Below are positions 27,363 through 43,439 of a DNA stretch of 64,000 nt, one piece after another; positions within the stretch are counted from its first letter, which is position 1, and each line of letters opens with the position of its first letter. Below the pieces are notes generated by a model that worked only from the letters and a program-made list of their open reading frames with translations, was not told the DNA's origin and ran no database searches. Source of the DNA: Hemiscyllium ocellatum (Eukaryota); assembly GCF_020745735.1 (NCBI RefSeq), contig NC_083409.1:15719873-15783872 (forward strand). Reading direction: 5' to 3'. Position numbers and translations under genes: made by a program.

Positions 27363-27862
27363 NNNNNNNNNNNNNNNNNNNNNNNNNNNNNNNNNNNNNN
27401 NNNNNNNNNNNNNNNNNNNNNNNNNNNNNNNNNNNNNNNNNNNNNNNNNNNNNNNNNNNNNNNNNNNNNNNNNNNNNNNNNNNNNNNNNNNNNNNNNNNN
27501 NNNNNNNNNNNNNNNNNNNNNNNNNNNNNNNNNNNNNNNNNNNNNNNNNNNNNNNNNNNNNNNNNNNNNNNNNNNNNNNNNNNNNNNNNNNNNNNNNNNN
27601 NNNNNNNNNNNNNNNNNNNNNNNNNNNNNNNNNNNNNNNNNNNNNNNNNNNNNNNNNNNNNNNNNNNNNNNNNNNNNNNNNNNNNNNNNNNNNNNNNNNN
27701 NNNNNNNNNNNNNNNNNNNNNNNNNNNNNNNNNNNNNNNNNNNNNNNNNNNNNNNNNNNNNNNNNNNNNNNNNNNNNNNNNNNNNNNNNNNNNNNNNNNN
27801 NNNNNNNNNNNNNNNNNNNNNNNNNNNNNNNNNNNNNNNNNNNNNNNNNNNNNNNNNNNNNN
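27363..27862. other. Assembly gap (500 N)
   Basis: Exactly 500 N, a round number typical of a scaffolding placeholder. Confidence 1.
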
Positions 27863-29842
27863 AGTCCTTCTCTAATGAGATTGTGGGTCTAGATTAGCAC
27901 CATCTTGTCAAGATGAGAGTGGTACTGGTGGAGCACAGCAGGTCAGGCAGCATCTAAAGAGCAGAAAAATTCAACCTTTCGGGCAAAAGCCTTTCATCCT
28001 CGGATGCTGCCTGACCTGCTGACAACGCCAGCAATCACTCCTAATCTTGACTCTGATCTCCAGCAATTGCAGTACCTCCACTGCTCCATCTACCATGTTC
28101 TCAAGGACAATTAGGGAAGGGCAATAAATGACAGCCCACATTTATGTAAACACCCACATTCCATGAATGAACAAAAAAAAAATACTCAAAGCTCATTGAG
28201 CACCAAGGAACTCCATTTTAATTCTAAACTCCTCAATAAACATTTTTTAAATGACTCCTCGGCTGGCCAAAATTTATTGACTGATCCGAGTTGCTTTTGA
28301 GAACCTGGTGAGCTATCTTTTGTAACCAATGCAGTCCATGTGTTGTATGTAGACCCACAATGCCCTTATGGAAGGCATTCCAGGGATGTAATACAGCAAT
28401 CCTGAAGAATCAGTGATATTTTTCTAAATCAGAATGGTGCGTGGCTCGGAGGGGCTTTTGCAAGTGTCAGTCCTGTGTATCTGCTGTTCTTGTCCTTCTA
28501 AAGCTAAATGGTCATAGATTTGGGAGGATCTGGCTAAAGATCTTTGAATTTTATACGATGCATCTTGTAGATTGTACACACTGCTGCTACTGAGTGGGGG
28601 GGTGGTGGAGGGCCTGGCTGCTTGCGGATGTGGTGCCAATCAAGTGGGCTCCTTTGTCTTGGATGGTGTCGAGCTTTTAGTGTGTTACTGGAGCTGCACT
28701 CATCCAGGCAAGTGAGGCCTATTCCATCAGACTCCTGACTTGTGCTTTGTACTCGGTGGATTTGCTATGGGGATCAGGAGGTGAGTTATACACAACAGTA
28801 TTCCAAGCCTCTGACCTGCCCTTGTAGCCCACAATATTTAAATAATCAGTCCAGATGAGTTCTGGTCCATGTTAATCCCCATGATGTTCATAGTGGAGGA
28901 TTCAGTGATGGTAACACCATTGAATGCCAAGGGCCATTGATTAAATATTCTGAGAGTTATAGCGTTGTATAGCTCAGAAACAGACCCTTTGGTTCAACTT
29001 GTCCTTACTGACCAGTTATCTGAGATAAAATCTAGTCCCACTCACTAGCATTTGGCCCATTTTCCTCTAAAAACCTTCCTATTCATATACTCATCCAGAT
29101 GCCTTATAAATATCTTTTTACAGTCGCCCCTCAGCCTCCGATGCTGCAGGGAAAATAGCCCCAACCAAATCACCCTCTTCCTATAGCAGAAACCCCCCAA
29201 CCCTGGCAATATCCTTGTAAAGCTTTGCATAACCCTTTGAAGATTCACAAAATCCTTACGAAAGCAGGGAGTCCAGAATTGCACACGGTATTCTAAAAGA
29301 GGCCGAATCATGTTCATGTACAGCCTCAAATATGATGTTTCAACTCCTAAACTCAATACTTTGACCAATAAATGCAAGCATAACAAACACCGCCTTCACA
29401 ATCCTGTCTATCTGTGATTCCACTTTCAAGGAATGATGAACATACATTCCAAGGTCTCTTTATTCAGCAACACTCCCCAGGCCTTTACCATTGAATGTAT
29501 ACGTCTTGCCCTGATTTGCCTTTACAAGATGCAACACTGTCCACTACACCTCCAATTTTGGTGTCATCTGCAAACTTACTAACCATACTATGTTCCATGT
29601 TCACATCCAGATCATTGATATGAACGACAAAAAGCAGTGAACCCAACACCGATCCTTGTGGCACACCACTGGTCACAGGCCTCCTACTGGAGATGGTCAT
29701 TGACTGGCAGTTTTGGTGCAAAACTTACTTGCCTCTTGCCACTCCATCCTGCATATTGTCCAGATCTTGTTGCCTTTGAACATAACCCCTCAGATACTGA
29801 GTCTATGAATGGTACTGAATATTGCGCAACCATCCGCACTTC
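27863..29842 (-). repeat. Segmental duplication copy 2 (inverted copy of 17700-19771)
   Basis: End matches: agtccttctctaatgagattgtgggtctag is the reverse complement of 19742-19771, and aaccatccgcacttc is the reverse complement of 17700-17714. It carries a private ~170-bp insertion (~27920-28095) and a deletion in the CR1 part. Confidence 0.9.
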
Positions 29843-31064
29843 AACGTTTTGGGCAAAATCCCTTCATCAGGAATAGAAGTAGGGTGCCTGCAGAGTGGAG
29901 AGATAAATGTGAGGGGTTGGGGAGAAAGTAGCATAGAGTACAATAGGTGAATGGGGTGGGGATGGAGGTGATAGGTCAGAGAGGAGGGTGGAGTGGATAG
30001 GTGGAAAGGAAGATAAGCAGGTAGGACAGGTCATGAGGATGGTGCTGAGGCTGGAACATTGGAGCTGGGGTGAGGTGGGGAAGGGGAAATGAGGAAGCTG
30101 GTGAAATCCACATTGATGCCATGGGATTGAAGTGTTCAGAGGCGGAAGATGAGGTGTTCTTCCTCTAGATGTTGGGTGTTGAGGGAGCGGCGGTGGAGGA
30201 GGCCTAGGACTTGCATGTCCTCGGCAGAGTGGGAGGGGGAGGTGAAATCTTGGGCCACAGGGCAGTGGGGTTGATTGGTGTGCTTGTCCCAGAGATGTTC
30301 CCTAAAGCGCTCTGCAAGGAGGTGTCCAGTCTCCCCAATATGGAGGAGACTGCCTCGGGTGCAACGGATACAATAAATGATATTGATGGATGTGCTGATA
30401 AAAATTTGATGGGTGTGGAAGGCTCTTTTGGGGCCTTAGATGGAGGTGAGGGAGGAGGTGTGGGCAGAGGTTTTGCAATTCCTGCGGTGGCAGGGGAGGG
30501 TGTCAGGAAGGGAGGGTGGGTTGTTGGGGGACGTGGACCTGACCAGGTAGTCATGGAGGAAACGGTCTTTGAGGAAAGCAGGAATGGGTGGGGAGGGAAA
30601 TATATCCCTGGTGGTGGAGTCCGTTTGGAGGTGGCGGAAATGTCGTCGAATGATGTGGTTTATGCAAAGGTTGGTAGGGTGGAAGGTGAGCACCAGGGTG
30701 ATTCTGTCCTTGTTACAGTTGGAGGGGTGGGGCTTGAGGGCCGAGGGTCGGATGTGGACGAGATGCGTTGGAGCGCATCTTTGACCACGTGGGAAGGGAA
30801 ATTGTGGTCACTAAAGAAGGATGCCATCTGGTGTGGTGGTGTGGTTCTGTGGTGAAACTGGTCCTCCTGGGAGCAAATATGGTGGAGGCGGAGGAATTGG
30901 GAATACGGGATGGCATTTTTGCAGGAGGTAGGTTGGGAAGAGGTGGAACCCTCGGTGTCGGTAGATTTGTAAAAAATGTCAGTGTCAAGTGGGTCATCAT
31001 TAATGGAGATGGAGTGGTCCAGGAAGGGGAGGGAGGTGTCAGAGATGGTCCAGGTGGTCATTAA
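29843..31064 (-). mobile_element. Penelope-like retroelement, 3' part (RT C-terminus, GIY-YIG endonuclease, terminal region)
   Basis: Piecewise minus-strand translation gives LPFLD..I, DIFYKSTD, CKNAIPYSQFLRL..IC, CHRRNCKT and NIIYCIRCTR...HIGETG...RFREH. The element ends in a decayed hammerhead motif. Confidence 0.88.
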
Positions 31065-31280
31065 TGGAAATCTGTTTGGAATCTTGTAACCTCCAATGAT
31101 TCCAGATCAAAGGGATCATTTGAAAGTGATTGATGATTGGCTGTCAGTATCCTCTACAACGGATGTGTCATTGATTGACAGGCGAATAGCCAATTGTGAC
31201 AATGCCATGCTGAAATGTAGCCAATCAGCTGAATGGAGTGGTCAATCTCCAAAGGACACAGAGACTGAATCTTCTTCATC

Positions 31281-38011: not shown

Positions 38012-40039
38012 AATGTTATGCCATTATTTGAGAAAGACTGTAAGGAAAAGCCAGGGAACTATAAACCAGTGAGCCTGATGTCAGTGCTGGGTAAGATGTT
38101 GGAGTGGATTCTGTGGGTTAGGATTTACGTTCTTTGGATAATCAATGTGGTTTTATGCATAGAAAATCATGTCTCCTGAATTTGATTGAGGAAGTGACAA
38201 AGAAGATTGATGAAGACAGAGCAGTAAACATTGTCTATATGGACTTTAGCAAAGTGTTTGACAAAGTTCCACATGATAGACTGGTTCGCAAGGTTAGACC
38301 ACATGGGATCCAGTGGGAGTGAGCCATTGGGGTAAAAAAATTGGATTGAAGATAGGAGACAGAGAGTGTTGGTAAAGGGTTGTTTTTCAGACTGGAAATC
38401 TGTGAATAGCTGTGTGCCACAAGCATTGGTGCTGGGTTCACTGCTTTTGTCTTTTAAAGAAATGATTTGGATGTGAATATAGGAGTTACAGTAAGTTTGT
38501 AGATGACATCAAAATTGGCGTGATAGTGGATAGTGAAGTAATTCATCTCAGGGTACAGCGGGATCTTGATCAGATGGGGCAATGGGCAGAGGTGTAGCAA
38601 ATGGAGTTCTGTTTAGTTAAATGCGAGATGTTACATTTTGGAAAGGCAAACCAAGGCAGGAGTTATACAGTTAATGGGAGGGCCCTGTGGAGTGTTGCTG
38701 AACAAAGAAACCTAGGGGTGAAGATGCAGGTGGATTATTCCTTGAAAGTGGGGTCACAGGTAGACAGGGTGATGAAGAAGGTGTTGGGTACGCTTGCCTT
38801 TATTGGTCACTGCATTGAGTACAGGAGTTGGGACATCATGGTGCAGCTGTACAGGAGATTGGTGAGGCCACTTTGGGAATGATGTGAACAATTCTGATCA
38901 TTCTGCGATAGGAAGGATGTTGTTAAACTTAAAAAGCTGCAGGAAATATTTACAAGGACATGGCCTGGAATTTGAGGGTTTGAGCTACGGGGAAAGGCTG
39001 ATGAAACTGTGGCTATTTTTCCTGCAGCATTCAAGGCTGAGGGATGGCCTTATAGATGTGTATAAAACCATGAGGGGCATGGACAGGTTGCATATCCAAG
39101 GTCTTTTCCTTTGGAAAGGGAGTCCAAAACAAGAGGGCATAGGTTTAAGGCGAGAGGCAAAAGATTCAAAAGGGATCTGAGCGGTAACTTGTCACACAGA
39201 GGGTGGTATGTGTATGGATCGAGTTGCCAGAGAAAGTGTTGGAGGCAGATACAATTACAGCATTTAAAACACATTGGGTTGGGTACACGGATAGGAAGGG
39301 TTTTGAGGGATGTAAGCCGAATGCTGGTTAATAGGATGAGGTCATTTAGGATATCTGGTTACCACGGACAAGTTGGACTGAAAGGTCTGTTTCCACGCTG
39401 TATGACTCCATGACTATAAGACGCTGGAAAAGCTGAGACTTTTTACTCTGATGCGTAAGAGTCTGAGGAGTGACTTATAAACCTTATAGAGGTTTATAAA
39501 ATCATGAGGGTCATAGAAAATGTGAATAAATCAGGAAGGAGGTGACGTTTTGTAGAAATGGCAAAAGAAATTCCCAAAGATCATTTCAGGGATGAGGAAC
39601 ATCAGTTATGAAGAGAGATTGGAGAATTTGGGACTGTCTTCTTTGGAGAAGGCTGAGAGGAGATTTGTTCGAGGAATTAAAACCAGGAGGGGCCTGGACA
39701 CAGTAAATAGGGAGAAAATGTTCCCAACTGAGAAATAATTGAGAGGGAGAGGCCATGGATTGAAAATAATTGGGAAAAGTAACAAAAGTGAGATAGGGAA
39801 CAACATTTTCAGGTAGTGTTTGGTTAAGGTGTGGAATGCACTGCCTGAGAGTGTGGTGGAGGCAGCTTCAATTGAAACATTCCAAAAGGAATGAGACTAT
39901 TATTCAAAAAGGAACAATGTGCAGGTGACAGGGAGAAGGCAGCAGAATGACACTCAGTGAATTGCTCATTCGGAGAGCCAGTACAGACAGGATGGACAGA
40001 ATGGCCTCCTTGTGCACTGTAACAATTCTCTGATTGTGT

Positions 40040-40440
40040 GATTGAGCAGAGTTAAAGCTGGGGGAGGTGGGAGCTCGGTGTCTCACTGTGCTGCTGCTGC
40101 TGCTGTGGTCAGTGAGATCAGAGACTGGGACAGGGAGCCAGAGCTCACATCAAACTCTACCCGTGTCCGTCACACTGAGACTGGCAGGAGGCTACTCACT
40201 GATTTCACTCCATGCTGCAGGAATGGGACCACAGGCTGCAAATGGACAGAGCTCCTCCACACGGTGAGTAAAACTTACTGACTTATATCTTGCTTTTAAA
40301 GGGGGCAATGGAACTAAAGAAATACAGGTGGATACGCTGTTAGACACAGTGCTCTTCAATCAACCATTTCATTCACTGCAGCTCCCTACTAACACCGTCA
40401 ACAATTCAGCATTTGTGTTTTAGAAAGTGTGTTTCAGTAT
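40040..40440. promoter_or_regulatory. Candidate J-C intronic enhancer
   Basis: The main non-repetitive island directly 3' of J. It has RUNX motifs (40104-40109, 40228-40233) and E-boxes (CAAATG at 40239, CAGGTG at 40325). Function is inferred. Confidence 0.35.
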
Positions 40441-40477: not shown

Positions 40478-40806
40478 TCAGTCTGAGCTTGGTTCCTTTA
40501 CCGAACGTAAAGGCCAGCTGCTATGCTGCATACAGTAATAGTCAGCGACATCCTCATTCTGAACGTTGCTGATTTTCAGGGTAAAACTGGTCCCTGATCC
40601 ACTGCCGGTGAATCGATCGGAGACTCCTGTGAATCGATTTGTTGCATAATAGATCAGGAGAGAGGGCTTCTGACCTTCTCGTTGTTGGTACCAATCAAGG
40701 GAGCTGCTAATGCTTTGACTGGCCGTACAGGTGAGTGTTGCGGTCTGGCCCCGTCCCACTGACAGCACCGGAGGAGACTGGGTCATGGTGATGTCCCCAC
40801 TGATAC
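40478..40806 (-). CDS. IGKV: Fused V-kappa/J-kappa exon (329 nt, one base short of in-frame)
   Basis: ccctcag|[52 protein letters not shown]...[14 protein letters not shown], followed immediately by J ([11 protein letters not shown]|gtaagt) in a shifted frame. There is no RSS between V and J. Confidence 0.96.
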
Positions 40807-40992: not shown

Positions 40993-41041
40993 CTGCGACA
41001 CAGAATGCCAGGGGCCAGATCAGCTGGATGTGTGAAATCAT
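40993..41041 (-). CDS. IGKV: Ig light-chain leader exon
   Basis: acaccATG ATT TCA CAC ATC CAG CTG ATC TGG CCC CTG GCA TTC TGT GTC GCA G|gtacaa = MISHIQLIWPLAFCVA. It is 49 nt, phase 1, compatible with the V exon. Confidence 0.95.
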
Positions 41042-41160: not shown

Positions 41161-42149
41161 CAGGCAGGGAGGGCCATGTCAGTCCCTCACACTTCCTCTT
41201 CTCTCTCTCTCTCTCTCTCTCTCAGAGAATCATTGATGTGAACAGCACTGAATGAGGCCATTTGGCCCATTGTATCTGTGCTGTTAAAGAAAGATCTGAT
41301 GACACTAATCTCATCCTCCAGCTCTTGGTCCATTATCCTGGAGTCTGCAGCAACACAAGGGAATATCTAATCACTGCTCCACTGTCACGAGAGTTTGTGA
41401 CTCAACCAGCCTTTCAGGCAGTGAGTTCCAGACTCCCACCACCCTCTGGTTGAAAACATTTCTCCTCAATTCTCCTCTCTCTCTCGAACTCGACTGGGCT
41501 TGGACTCACTCGAATTCAGATGGATGTATAAAATTCTAACAGGGCTGGGCAGGGACGAGGTTTCCCCTGGTTGGGAAGTCTGGAACCAGGGGACACAGTC
41601 TCAGGGGGATACAGGGTAGTCCATTTTTGGACTGAGATGAGGAAACATTTCTTCACTCAGAGGGTGGTCAACCTGTGGAATTCTCTTCACTGAAGGCTGT
41701 GGAGGATAAGGAACTGAATATATTCAAGAAAAAGAGAGAGATAATTGTTTGCATTTTAACAGCATGAAGGGAATAGGGAGAAAGCACGAATATGGCTTTG
41801 AGATAGAGGATCAGCCATGATCATACTGAATGACAGAACAGGCTCAAAGGGCTGAATGGCCAACTCCTGCAGCAGTTTCTATGTGTCCATGTCTGTGTTA
41901 CCTACAATCTCTGTCCCAGGTTACTGAGTCCTTGTCTCATGCAAAAAGTGTCTTCCTACCCACCCTATCACTGCTCCGAATATTCTTATCCCTCTCTATC
42001 AGGTCCCATCTCAGCCGTCACTGCTCCAAGGAAAACAACCCCAACCTTTCCAATCTTTTCTCAAAGCTCAGATTCAGTCAGCATCCTGGGAAATCTCCCC
42101 TGTACCCTCTCAGGTACAATCACATCCTTCCGAGAATGTGGTGACCAGG

Positions 42150-42485
42150 ACATGTCCCTCTCTCTCTGTCTCACATCTGCCACATCTTTCTCTCCACCAC
42201 TCTCTCCCCCACTGTTAATCGCTCATGTTTTCTCTCTCTCTTTCTCACACTCTTGTCTCATAGTCACTCCCTCCAACTCACTGATGATTGCTCACTCCAT
42301 TTCATAATCTCTGTTTCTCCATCTCTCTGTCTCTGTCACTCGCTCCCTCTCTCACTTCAATTAAAAGCCTCCAACTGTTATCTTTCCCTCTATATTCCTC
42401 CCTCTGTCTCTCTCCCTCCCTCTCTACATCCCAATCTACAGTCGCTCTCCCTCCCTCTCTATCATTCTGTACCTACCCATACTCA

Positions 42486-42521
<36 letters not shown>

Positions 42522-42830
42522 TCCACCCTACCCTCTCTGTCAATTCTCTTCATGCTTAGTCTCACACCCATCCTATCTCTCACTCTCTCTCTCTCTCACC
42601 TTATCTCTTTGTCTCTCTCCATCCCTATCAGTCACACTGTCTCACATCTTGTTTCTCTCTCTTTATCCCTCAACTTCACCATTACGACCTCCCTTTACCT
42701 CTCTTTTGGTTTCATCACATATCTCACACTGTCTCAGATGTTCCTCCCTCCCTCTCTCTCTCTCACTCAAACACAAACCCAGACACTCTCATTCTATCTC
42801 TCTCTCTGTCTCGCTTCTCTCTCTTTCTGA
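42150..42830. repeat. Pyrimidine-rich (CT)n low-complexity tract
   Basis: About 680 bp dominated by ctctct and ctca repeats. Confidence 0.9.
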
Positions 42831-43439
42831 CAGTGTCCTGGGTGGTGACAGTTAAATGCAGGATAAATCTCCCTCTGCTCTGCCCCACAAATGGATGTTA
42901 CCCCTTGACCCCTGTCTTCTCCTGGAATAAAGCCCCATTTCCCACAATGACCAGGGTTTGGTCTGTCTCGGGAAGATGGACGATTCTTGTGAAATGAAGG
43001 GCAGTTCTGTGCTGTTCTGTTCTGTTGGCCTGTTCTCACTGGGGACTGGTTTGGACACAAACCTCATTCCATGAAGGCCCAGCAGAGAGAGGAGATCCTC
43101 AGGCCATCAGTGTGAGCTGGAGGGACAGGACAGACTCTGACCTACTGACCCATCCTGTCCATTCACAACATGTTCCAATCCCTTCCCCTCTCCTTCCCCT
43201 TCCACAGTCAGTCTTTTCTGAAATGGAGTGGTCCCTTCCCTGTCTCACACCAAGGAGGAGATGGACAGATATTTAATGGGTAATGGGTTAAAGGATGATG
43301 GAGAGTGGGCAGGAATGTGGAGTTGAGTCTGAGATGGGATCAGCCATGATTGTATTAAATGGTGGAGTGGGCTCGAGGGGCTGAATTGCCTGCTCCTGCT
43401 CCTAGTTCTTATGTTCCTCACCCCCTCCCCCATTCCTCT

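Follow-up and report, generated by a model that had tools for sequence, protein, structure and literature searches.

The window (the entire 64-kb stretch of Hemiscyllium ocellatum DNA that was analysed) contains a single, complete light-chain cluster of the kappa (NS4/type III) type, which lies on the minus strand and is laid out in Table 1. A six-frame motif scan of the 64 kb detected only one V and one J signature, and there is one C1-set exon. In Pfam searches the V part matched V-set (E 3e-18) and the C exon matched C1-set (E 1e-22). Both introns have GT-AG borders, and the promoter, leader, splice sites and C exon were all found undamaged, as the first-pass annotation of this DNA had stated. 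That annotation covered positions 40478-40806; the C exon is found outside them, 8.3 kb downstream of the V-J exon. The predicted leader peptide shows no difference from the nurse shark NS4 leader (protein P0009). The V domain possesses the canonical Cys/Trp/Cys residues, and at positions with a conservation of 85% or more among 26 relatives only L18R and T77K are unusual.

The sequence around the gene contains several low-complexity or repeat-like features. A CT-rich stretch (42253-42855), approximately 1.2 kb from the promoter on its upstream side, yields long spurious Ser/Leu-rich ORFs, and a (CT)n microsatellite is present at about 41200-41232. Approximately 4 kb downstream of the C exon there is a 500-base run of N (27363-27862), which is an assembly gap or mask. 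An ORF on the minus strand downstream of the C exon (30139-30435) matches GIY-YIG weakly, at a level that misses the Pfam cut-off (E 5e-4). This match suggests a remnant of a Penelope-like retroelement; the long ORFs neighbouring it (29048-31106) had no Pfam match.

Table 1. Features of the kappa light-chain cluster, in coding order, with positions in the window.
Feature	Position	Strand	Remarks
Octamer-like promoter element ATTTACAT	41155-41148	minus	Same in promoters of split Chiloscyllium punctatum clusters L001-L003
TATAAA box	41107-41102	minus	Kept in split C. punctatum clusters L001-L003
Leader exon, 49 nt, ATG at 41041, donor G/GTACAA	41041-40993	minus	Encodes MISHIQLIWPLAFCVA(G)
Leader intron, 186 bp, GT..AG	40992-40807	minus	Between leader exon and V-J exon
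Single V-J exon	40806-40478	minus	After acceptor CCTCAG, before donor GTAAGT
V-derived part, FR1 to CDR3, ends ...TGGCCT; T at 40510 ambiguous	40806-40511	minus	V-set match
Coding joint, TTT run, V (...GGCCTT) meets GC-trimmed J (TTACG...)	40511-40509	minus	Contig ends and two-block alignments
J-derived part TTACG TTC GGT AAA GGA ACC AAG CTC AGA CTG A	40510-40478	minus	Then donor GTAAGT
TGA stop of V frame, completed on final exon base	40480-40478	minus	Frame reading
J-C intron, 8342 bp, GT-AG, contains repeat-derived segments	40477-32136	minus	Between V-J and C exons
C exon, acceptor TTTCAG/GT, TAG stop at 31809-31807	32135-31807	minus	C1-set match
AATAAA, candidate polyadenylation signal by position, 523 nt past stop	31286-31281	minus	

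A RefSeq protein of the same species (P0001, GCA_020745735.1), named 'immunoglobulin kappa light chain-like', matches the V of the window gene at 100% identity. Compared with the product of a nurse shark NS4 cDNA (P0009), the V is 89% and the C 92% identical, and a horned shark 'kappa light chain' (P0032) is 70% identical to the window gene. The NS4 primers NSL, NS4A and JL5 (Lee et al. 2000) each have one site in the window with 0 mismatches; NSL matches the leader, and JL5 matches at 18/18 positions (40488-40505). The distance from NSL to JL5 is 552 bp. In nurse shark the NSL-JL5 product is ~550 bp from germline-rearranged NS4 genes and ~1,078 bp from split genes, and the NS4 leader intron is also 186 bp (PMC2193156). 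The NS4 identities, the primer matches, the 552-bp spacing and the leader intron of the same length together identify the window gene as a kappa/NS4/type III cluster. By its sequence it is therefore a member of elasmobranch kappa with the mini-cluster layout of a split leader, one V, one J and one C. This assignment was made through identity to NS4/type III sequences and through primer sites. PDB sequence searches were also conducted, but the names of the matches did not discriminate kappa from lambda and were not used for the assignment.

The V runs straight into the J with no heptamer, nonamer or spacer, and the sequence that had been quoted for this join in the first-pass annotation was confirmed on the minus strand. 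Between positions 30000 and 43000, no heptamer in coding orientation has a nonamer at 12 or 23 (+/-1) bp. Unrearranged kappa signals, a 12-RSS at V and a 23-RSS at J, are present in C. punctatum L001 and L002 and at the ends of contigs from H. ocellatum itself. In L001 and L002 the V is followed by CACAGTG-12-ACAAAAACC and the J is preceded by nonamer-23-CACTGTG. When the three unrearranged C. punctatum clusters (L001, L002, L003) are aligned with the window, each forms two collinear blocks of 85-92% identity. The V-side blocks end at 40507-40516 and the J-side blocks restart at 40508-40511, while 448-675 bp of RSS-bearing V-J spacer have no counterpart in the window.

Contigs from the same species allow the germline ends of both segments to be read. 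In all four runs (4/4), contigs matching the J cease to match at 40510; beyond it they read ...CTCT-CACTGTG-GC in reverse complement, which places the germline J start at CACTGTG|GCTTACGTTCGG. In run X2, contigs matching the 3' end of the V from 40510 upward run on into the reverse complement of CACAGTG-ATACAGAGCCAT. A germline V therefore ends ...TGGCCTT|CACAGTG-ATACAGAGCCAT, with an RSS of the 12-spacer type. The same 12-bp spacer, ATACAGAGCCAT, also follows the V of C. punctatum L003.

With both ends known, the joint of the window gene, GGCCTTTACG, has two equivalent readings: an untrimmed V joined to a J lacking 3 bases, or a V lacking 1 base joined to a J lacking 2. In either reading 2-3 bases were trimmed, one T is microhomology, and there are zero N or P bases. 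An alignment to unrearranged clusters had been proposed in the first-pass annotation as a check on trimming and on N/P nucleotides; it was conducted with L001-L003 and the same-species contigs, and no added bases were found. Both breakpoints are at most 3 nt from the heptamer borders. For an unguided deletion the chance of this is ~1e-4, assuming that each breakpoint is uniform over about 600 nt. Breakpoints at both RSS borders together with small trimming are the signature of a V(D)J (RAG-type) coding joint.

The earlier attribution of the join to RAG is in this way supported by the structure of the joint: it lies at the RSS borders, trimming is small and no bases were added, as in nurse shark NS4, where germline joints show 'little evidence of TdT activity' (PMC2193156), and both introns were kept. 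RAG as the agent, and germ cells as the place where it acted, are inferred. A retrocopy origin of the joined gene was ruled out, since the introns are retained. A chimeric misassembly between clusters was also ruled out, since it could not remove both RSSs to the exact base.

The first-pass annotation was silent on the reading frame, and the join is out of frame by one base. The V frame meets a TGA that is formed by the final three bases of the V-J exon. The J motif is found in a different frame from the V, and the C exon continues in phase from the J frame only. As assembled, the gene has a predicted product of 125 aa, which consists of the leader, the V and a ten-residue tail. With one extra T in the TTT run the V and J would be in frame, and an untrimmed V joined to a J lacking 2 bases gives exactly TTTT. 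A join that was out of frame from the outset, which takes one event, is preferred here over a later loss of a T. Being non-productive, the join most likely leaves a dead gene and not a ready-made light chain. A weaker possibility is that, with the stop falling on the final base of the next-to-last exon, a transcript should escape nonsense-mediated decay and could give rise to a free secreted V domain.

The frameshift is masked in the public annotation. The RefSeq model of the window gene (P0001) leaves the J after ...SVKEP and adds an 11-residue segment, IPLPPLKARYK; it contains no FGxG motif. The PLPPLKARY part of this segment maps, as a peptide, to the J-C intron (40311-40285, minus strand), and the region of the segment in the window is 40279-40313. 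The model stays open only through residues of the J-C intron and is an annotation workaround that hides the frameshift. Such RefSeq models are unfit for use as light-chain sequences, and the public protein of the window gene serves as a practical warning.

A joined kappa gene is also found in C. punctatum. The locus L004:3001-7428 (BEZZ01000502.1, protein P0031) carries a kappa gene that is complete and in frame, in which the V is fused to the J (...YYCMQDYSVPQTLSFGKGTKLQL|gtaagt). No RSS was found in 10.4 kb of this locus, both introns are kept, and the scaffold is 1.65 Mb long. However, its V is only 71% identical to that of the window gene, it spans about 4.4 kb compared with 9.2 kb, and it is in frame while the window gene is not. 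On this sequence comparison L004 is a member of a different subfamily and not the orthologue of the window gene. It may represent an old, conserved subfamily of joined kappa genes in hemiscylliids.

Three further C. punctatum protein models (P0002, P0004 and P0006; GCA_047496795.1) run continuously from V through J to C and contain no RSS-derived residues. P0002 and P0004 begin in a leader-intron ORF identical to that of the window, and the N-terminus of P0006 is unrelated. The CDR3 of P0002 (MQHYSWSLTFGSGTK) is similar to that of the window gene. All three are possibly joined genes, and P0002 is a possible orthologue of the window gene. A separate similarity was observed within the J-C intron, where a 182-bp stretch with a CTG run (39965-40146) is 96% identical to L002:4144-4325, and the neighbouring intron is 85-90% identical. 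Contig depth over this stretch is very high in every run, and the stretch is probably repeat sequence, with a conserved intronic element as the alternative.

The spleen is a lymphoid organ with B cells. It was also the source of the long-read DNA, of which 25 mg of tissue were taken from a pre-hatching male (PMC10587355). The H. ocellatum reference represents the paternal haplotype, trio-binned and assembled with TrioCanu from ~50x PacBio CLR data and polished with Arrow and two rounds of freebayes (PMC10587355). A single B cell's rearrangement cannot dominate a polished consensus of ~25 reads per haplotype, and by this argument the joined form is very probably heritable.

Logan contigs matching the locus in four runs of the same species are 60-115 nt long, and among those listed none spans 40510; such contigs drop the single-copy paths of multi-copy families. 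At 40510 they show split-type V-RSS and RSS-J sequences, which are expected from paralogues, and at 40509-40511 these short contigs, none of those listed crossing 40510, report neither a joint nor an indel. The lowest contig depths suggest a real whole-genome coverage of ~18-29 in three runs. In searches of sequence runs, no run contained even 50% of the sampled words, with shares barely above those found for other species. These low shares fit a multi-copy family whose single-copy variants drop out of Logan contigs.

Run X2, which comes from a resequenced individual, contains a split V that does not differ from the window gene at its 3' end up to 40510 and then continues into CACAGTG and the spacer given above. 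It is unlikely, though worth stating, that this split V is an unjoined allele of the window gene and not a paralogue, in which case the join would be a recent germline RAG event that is still segregating. In that case joined and split alleles would be visible side by side at one locus in the published pedigree of parents and offspring, which would provide a handle on the frequency of RAG activity in shark germ cells.

Three other accounts of the joined gene were weighed against a RAG-type germline join that is out of frame. Apart from the joint, no damage is seen in the V, the C, the splice sites or the promoter, a state that a functional gene carrying an assembly error of one base would also show. 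Under that account the gene is germline-joined and truly in frame, with the full V and the J lacking 2 bases giving exactly the TTTT that the frame needs, and one T was lost as a homopolymer error of the CLR reads. An assembly of CLR reads made by TrioCanu and polished with Arrow and freebayes, as here, is compatible with such a loss. The missing T would have been left unmended because short reads are hard to place in a family of many copies. Against this, ~700 coding bases of the gene contain no other frame error, random joins are out of frame in ~2/3 of cases anyway, and among the six joined NS4 genes of the nurse shark there are two pseudogenes. The contigs likewise have no inserted T at 40509-40511, with the caveat that none of those listed spans the joint. 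The truly in-frame gene is considered very unlikely.

Even less credence is given to a join that arose somatically, as a non-productive rearrangement of a B cell, at a locus that is split in the germ line. The tissue used for long reads was spleen, the joint is the sole defect of the gene, and the split V of run X2 matches it exactly up to the RSS, all of which are points in favour of such a rearrangement. It would, however, have had to set a haplotype consensus of ~25 reads from one clone in an embryonic spleen in which many clusters were available. Somatic light-chain joints in sharks also usually carry N bases (PMC2193156), and the window joint has none. In addition, the joined kappa gene L004 is present in an independent assembly of another hemiscylliid. 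A loss of the spacer through ordinary deletion without RAG, either replication slippage or end joining at the common T, is equally improbable. The one-base microhomology at the joint fits it, and there are no P nucleotides that would prove a hairpin intermediate, but the breakpoints lie 0-3 bases from both heptamer borders, and this placement has the ~1e-4 chance calculated above.

The best explanation is therefore an out-of-frame, RAG-type germline join of V and J, which left a heritable, non-functional and barely decayed relic (probability approximately 0.78). The window gene is one cluster of the large kappa (NS4/type III) array in the epaulette shark. In the germ line, RAG-type recombination between the 12-RSS of the V and the 23-RSS of the J would have deleted about 0.5 kb. 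The end of the V would have been left whole or have lost one base, the J would have lost 2-3, one T would have been common to both, and nothing would have been added. The resulting joint is one base short of frame. A transcript started at the undamaged promoter would code for the leader, the V and ten junk residues, and translation would stop on the final base of the V-J exon, so that in-frame reading would reach neither J nor C. Most likely the gene therefore has no function.

The main evidence for past activity of the V(D)J recombinase in shark germ cells, and for its having reshaped antigen-receptor loci, comes from antibody genes that are joined in the germ line. The present locus is a cleanly reconstructable case in a species whose genome is assembled to chromosome scale, whose mutation rate is the lowest measured in a vertebrate and for which a pedigree has been sequenced. 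Joined and split copies in H. ocellatum could be dated and counted across the array. On its own the locus leaves the established picture unchanged.

That cartilaginous fish carry Ig clusters already joined in the germ line, nurse shark NS4 included, was stated as established in the first-pass annotation and agrees with Lee et al. 2000 (PMC2193156). The nurse shark is estimated to have ~50 NS4 genes, of which about 10% are joined (Lee et al. 2000, PMC2193156). Six unique joined genes were cloned, four of them in frame (R4, R7, R18, RE18) and two pseudogenes (R6, R19) (PMC2193156). They were attributed to at least 5 independent germline events dated from 0-7 to ~49 Myr; joined genes were found in 7/7 sharks tested, and their expression was detected in pups (PMC2193156). 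A search for literature on Hemiscyllium light-chain loci or on joined kappa genes in Chiloscyllium found no paper.

Two other kinds of cluster frame the comparison. Split NS4/type III clusters (nurse shark S1, S10 and S31, horned shark type III, and C. punctatum L001-L003) are ~88-92% identical to the window gene in promoter, leader, intron and V, and in L001-L003 the J and the first ~230 bp of the J-C intron are 85-90% identical. The split clusters keep the V-12-RSS, a spacer of about 0.45-0.7 kb and the 23-RSS-J, whereas the window gene has none of these. The uniformly joined isotypes (NS3/type II lambda, and skate type I, PMC2192082) share with the window gene a VJ that is fused in the germ line. 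In those isotypes, however, every member is joined and expressed, while the window gene is a joined member of a mostly split family.

The joined NS4 genes of the nurse shark (Ginglymostoma cirratum) are the closest parallel. They are of the same isotype, from the same shark order, and have the same cluster layout, the 186-bp leader intron and the ~550-bp leader-J product. Trimming is likewise small, N addition is little or none, the promoter is as in split genes, and some members are non-functional. The window gene differs in belonging to the family Hemiscylliidae, and its germline origin is deduced from an assembly, whereas in the nurse shark erythrocyte DNA, Southern blots and several individuals were used. 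The species is new but the kind of gene, dead members included, is already known, and the window gene fits the description of Lee et al. 2000 in all features tested.
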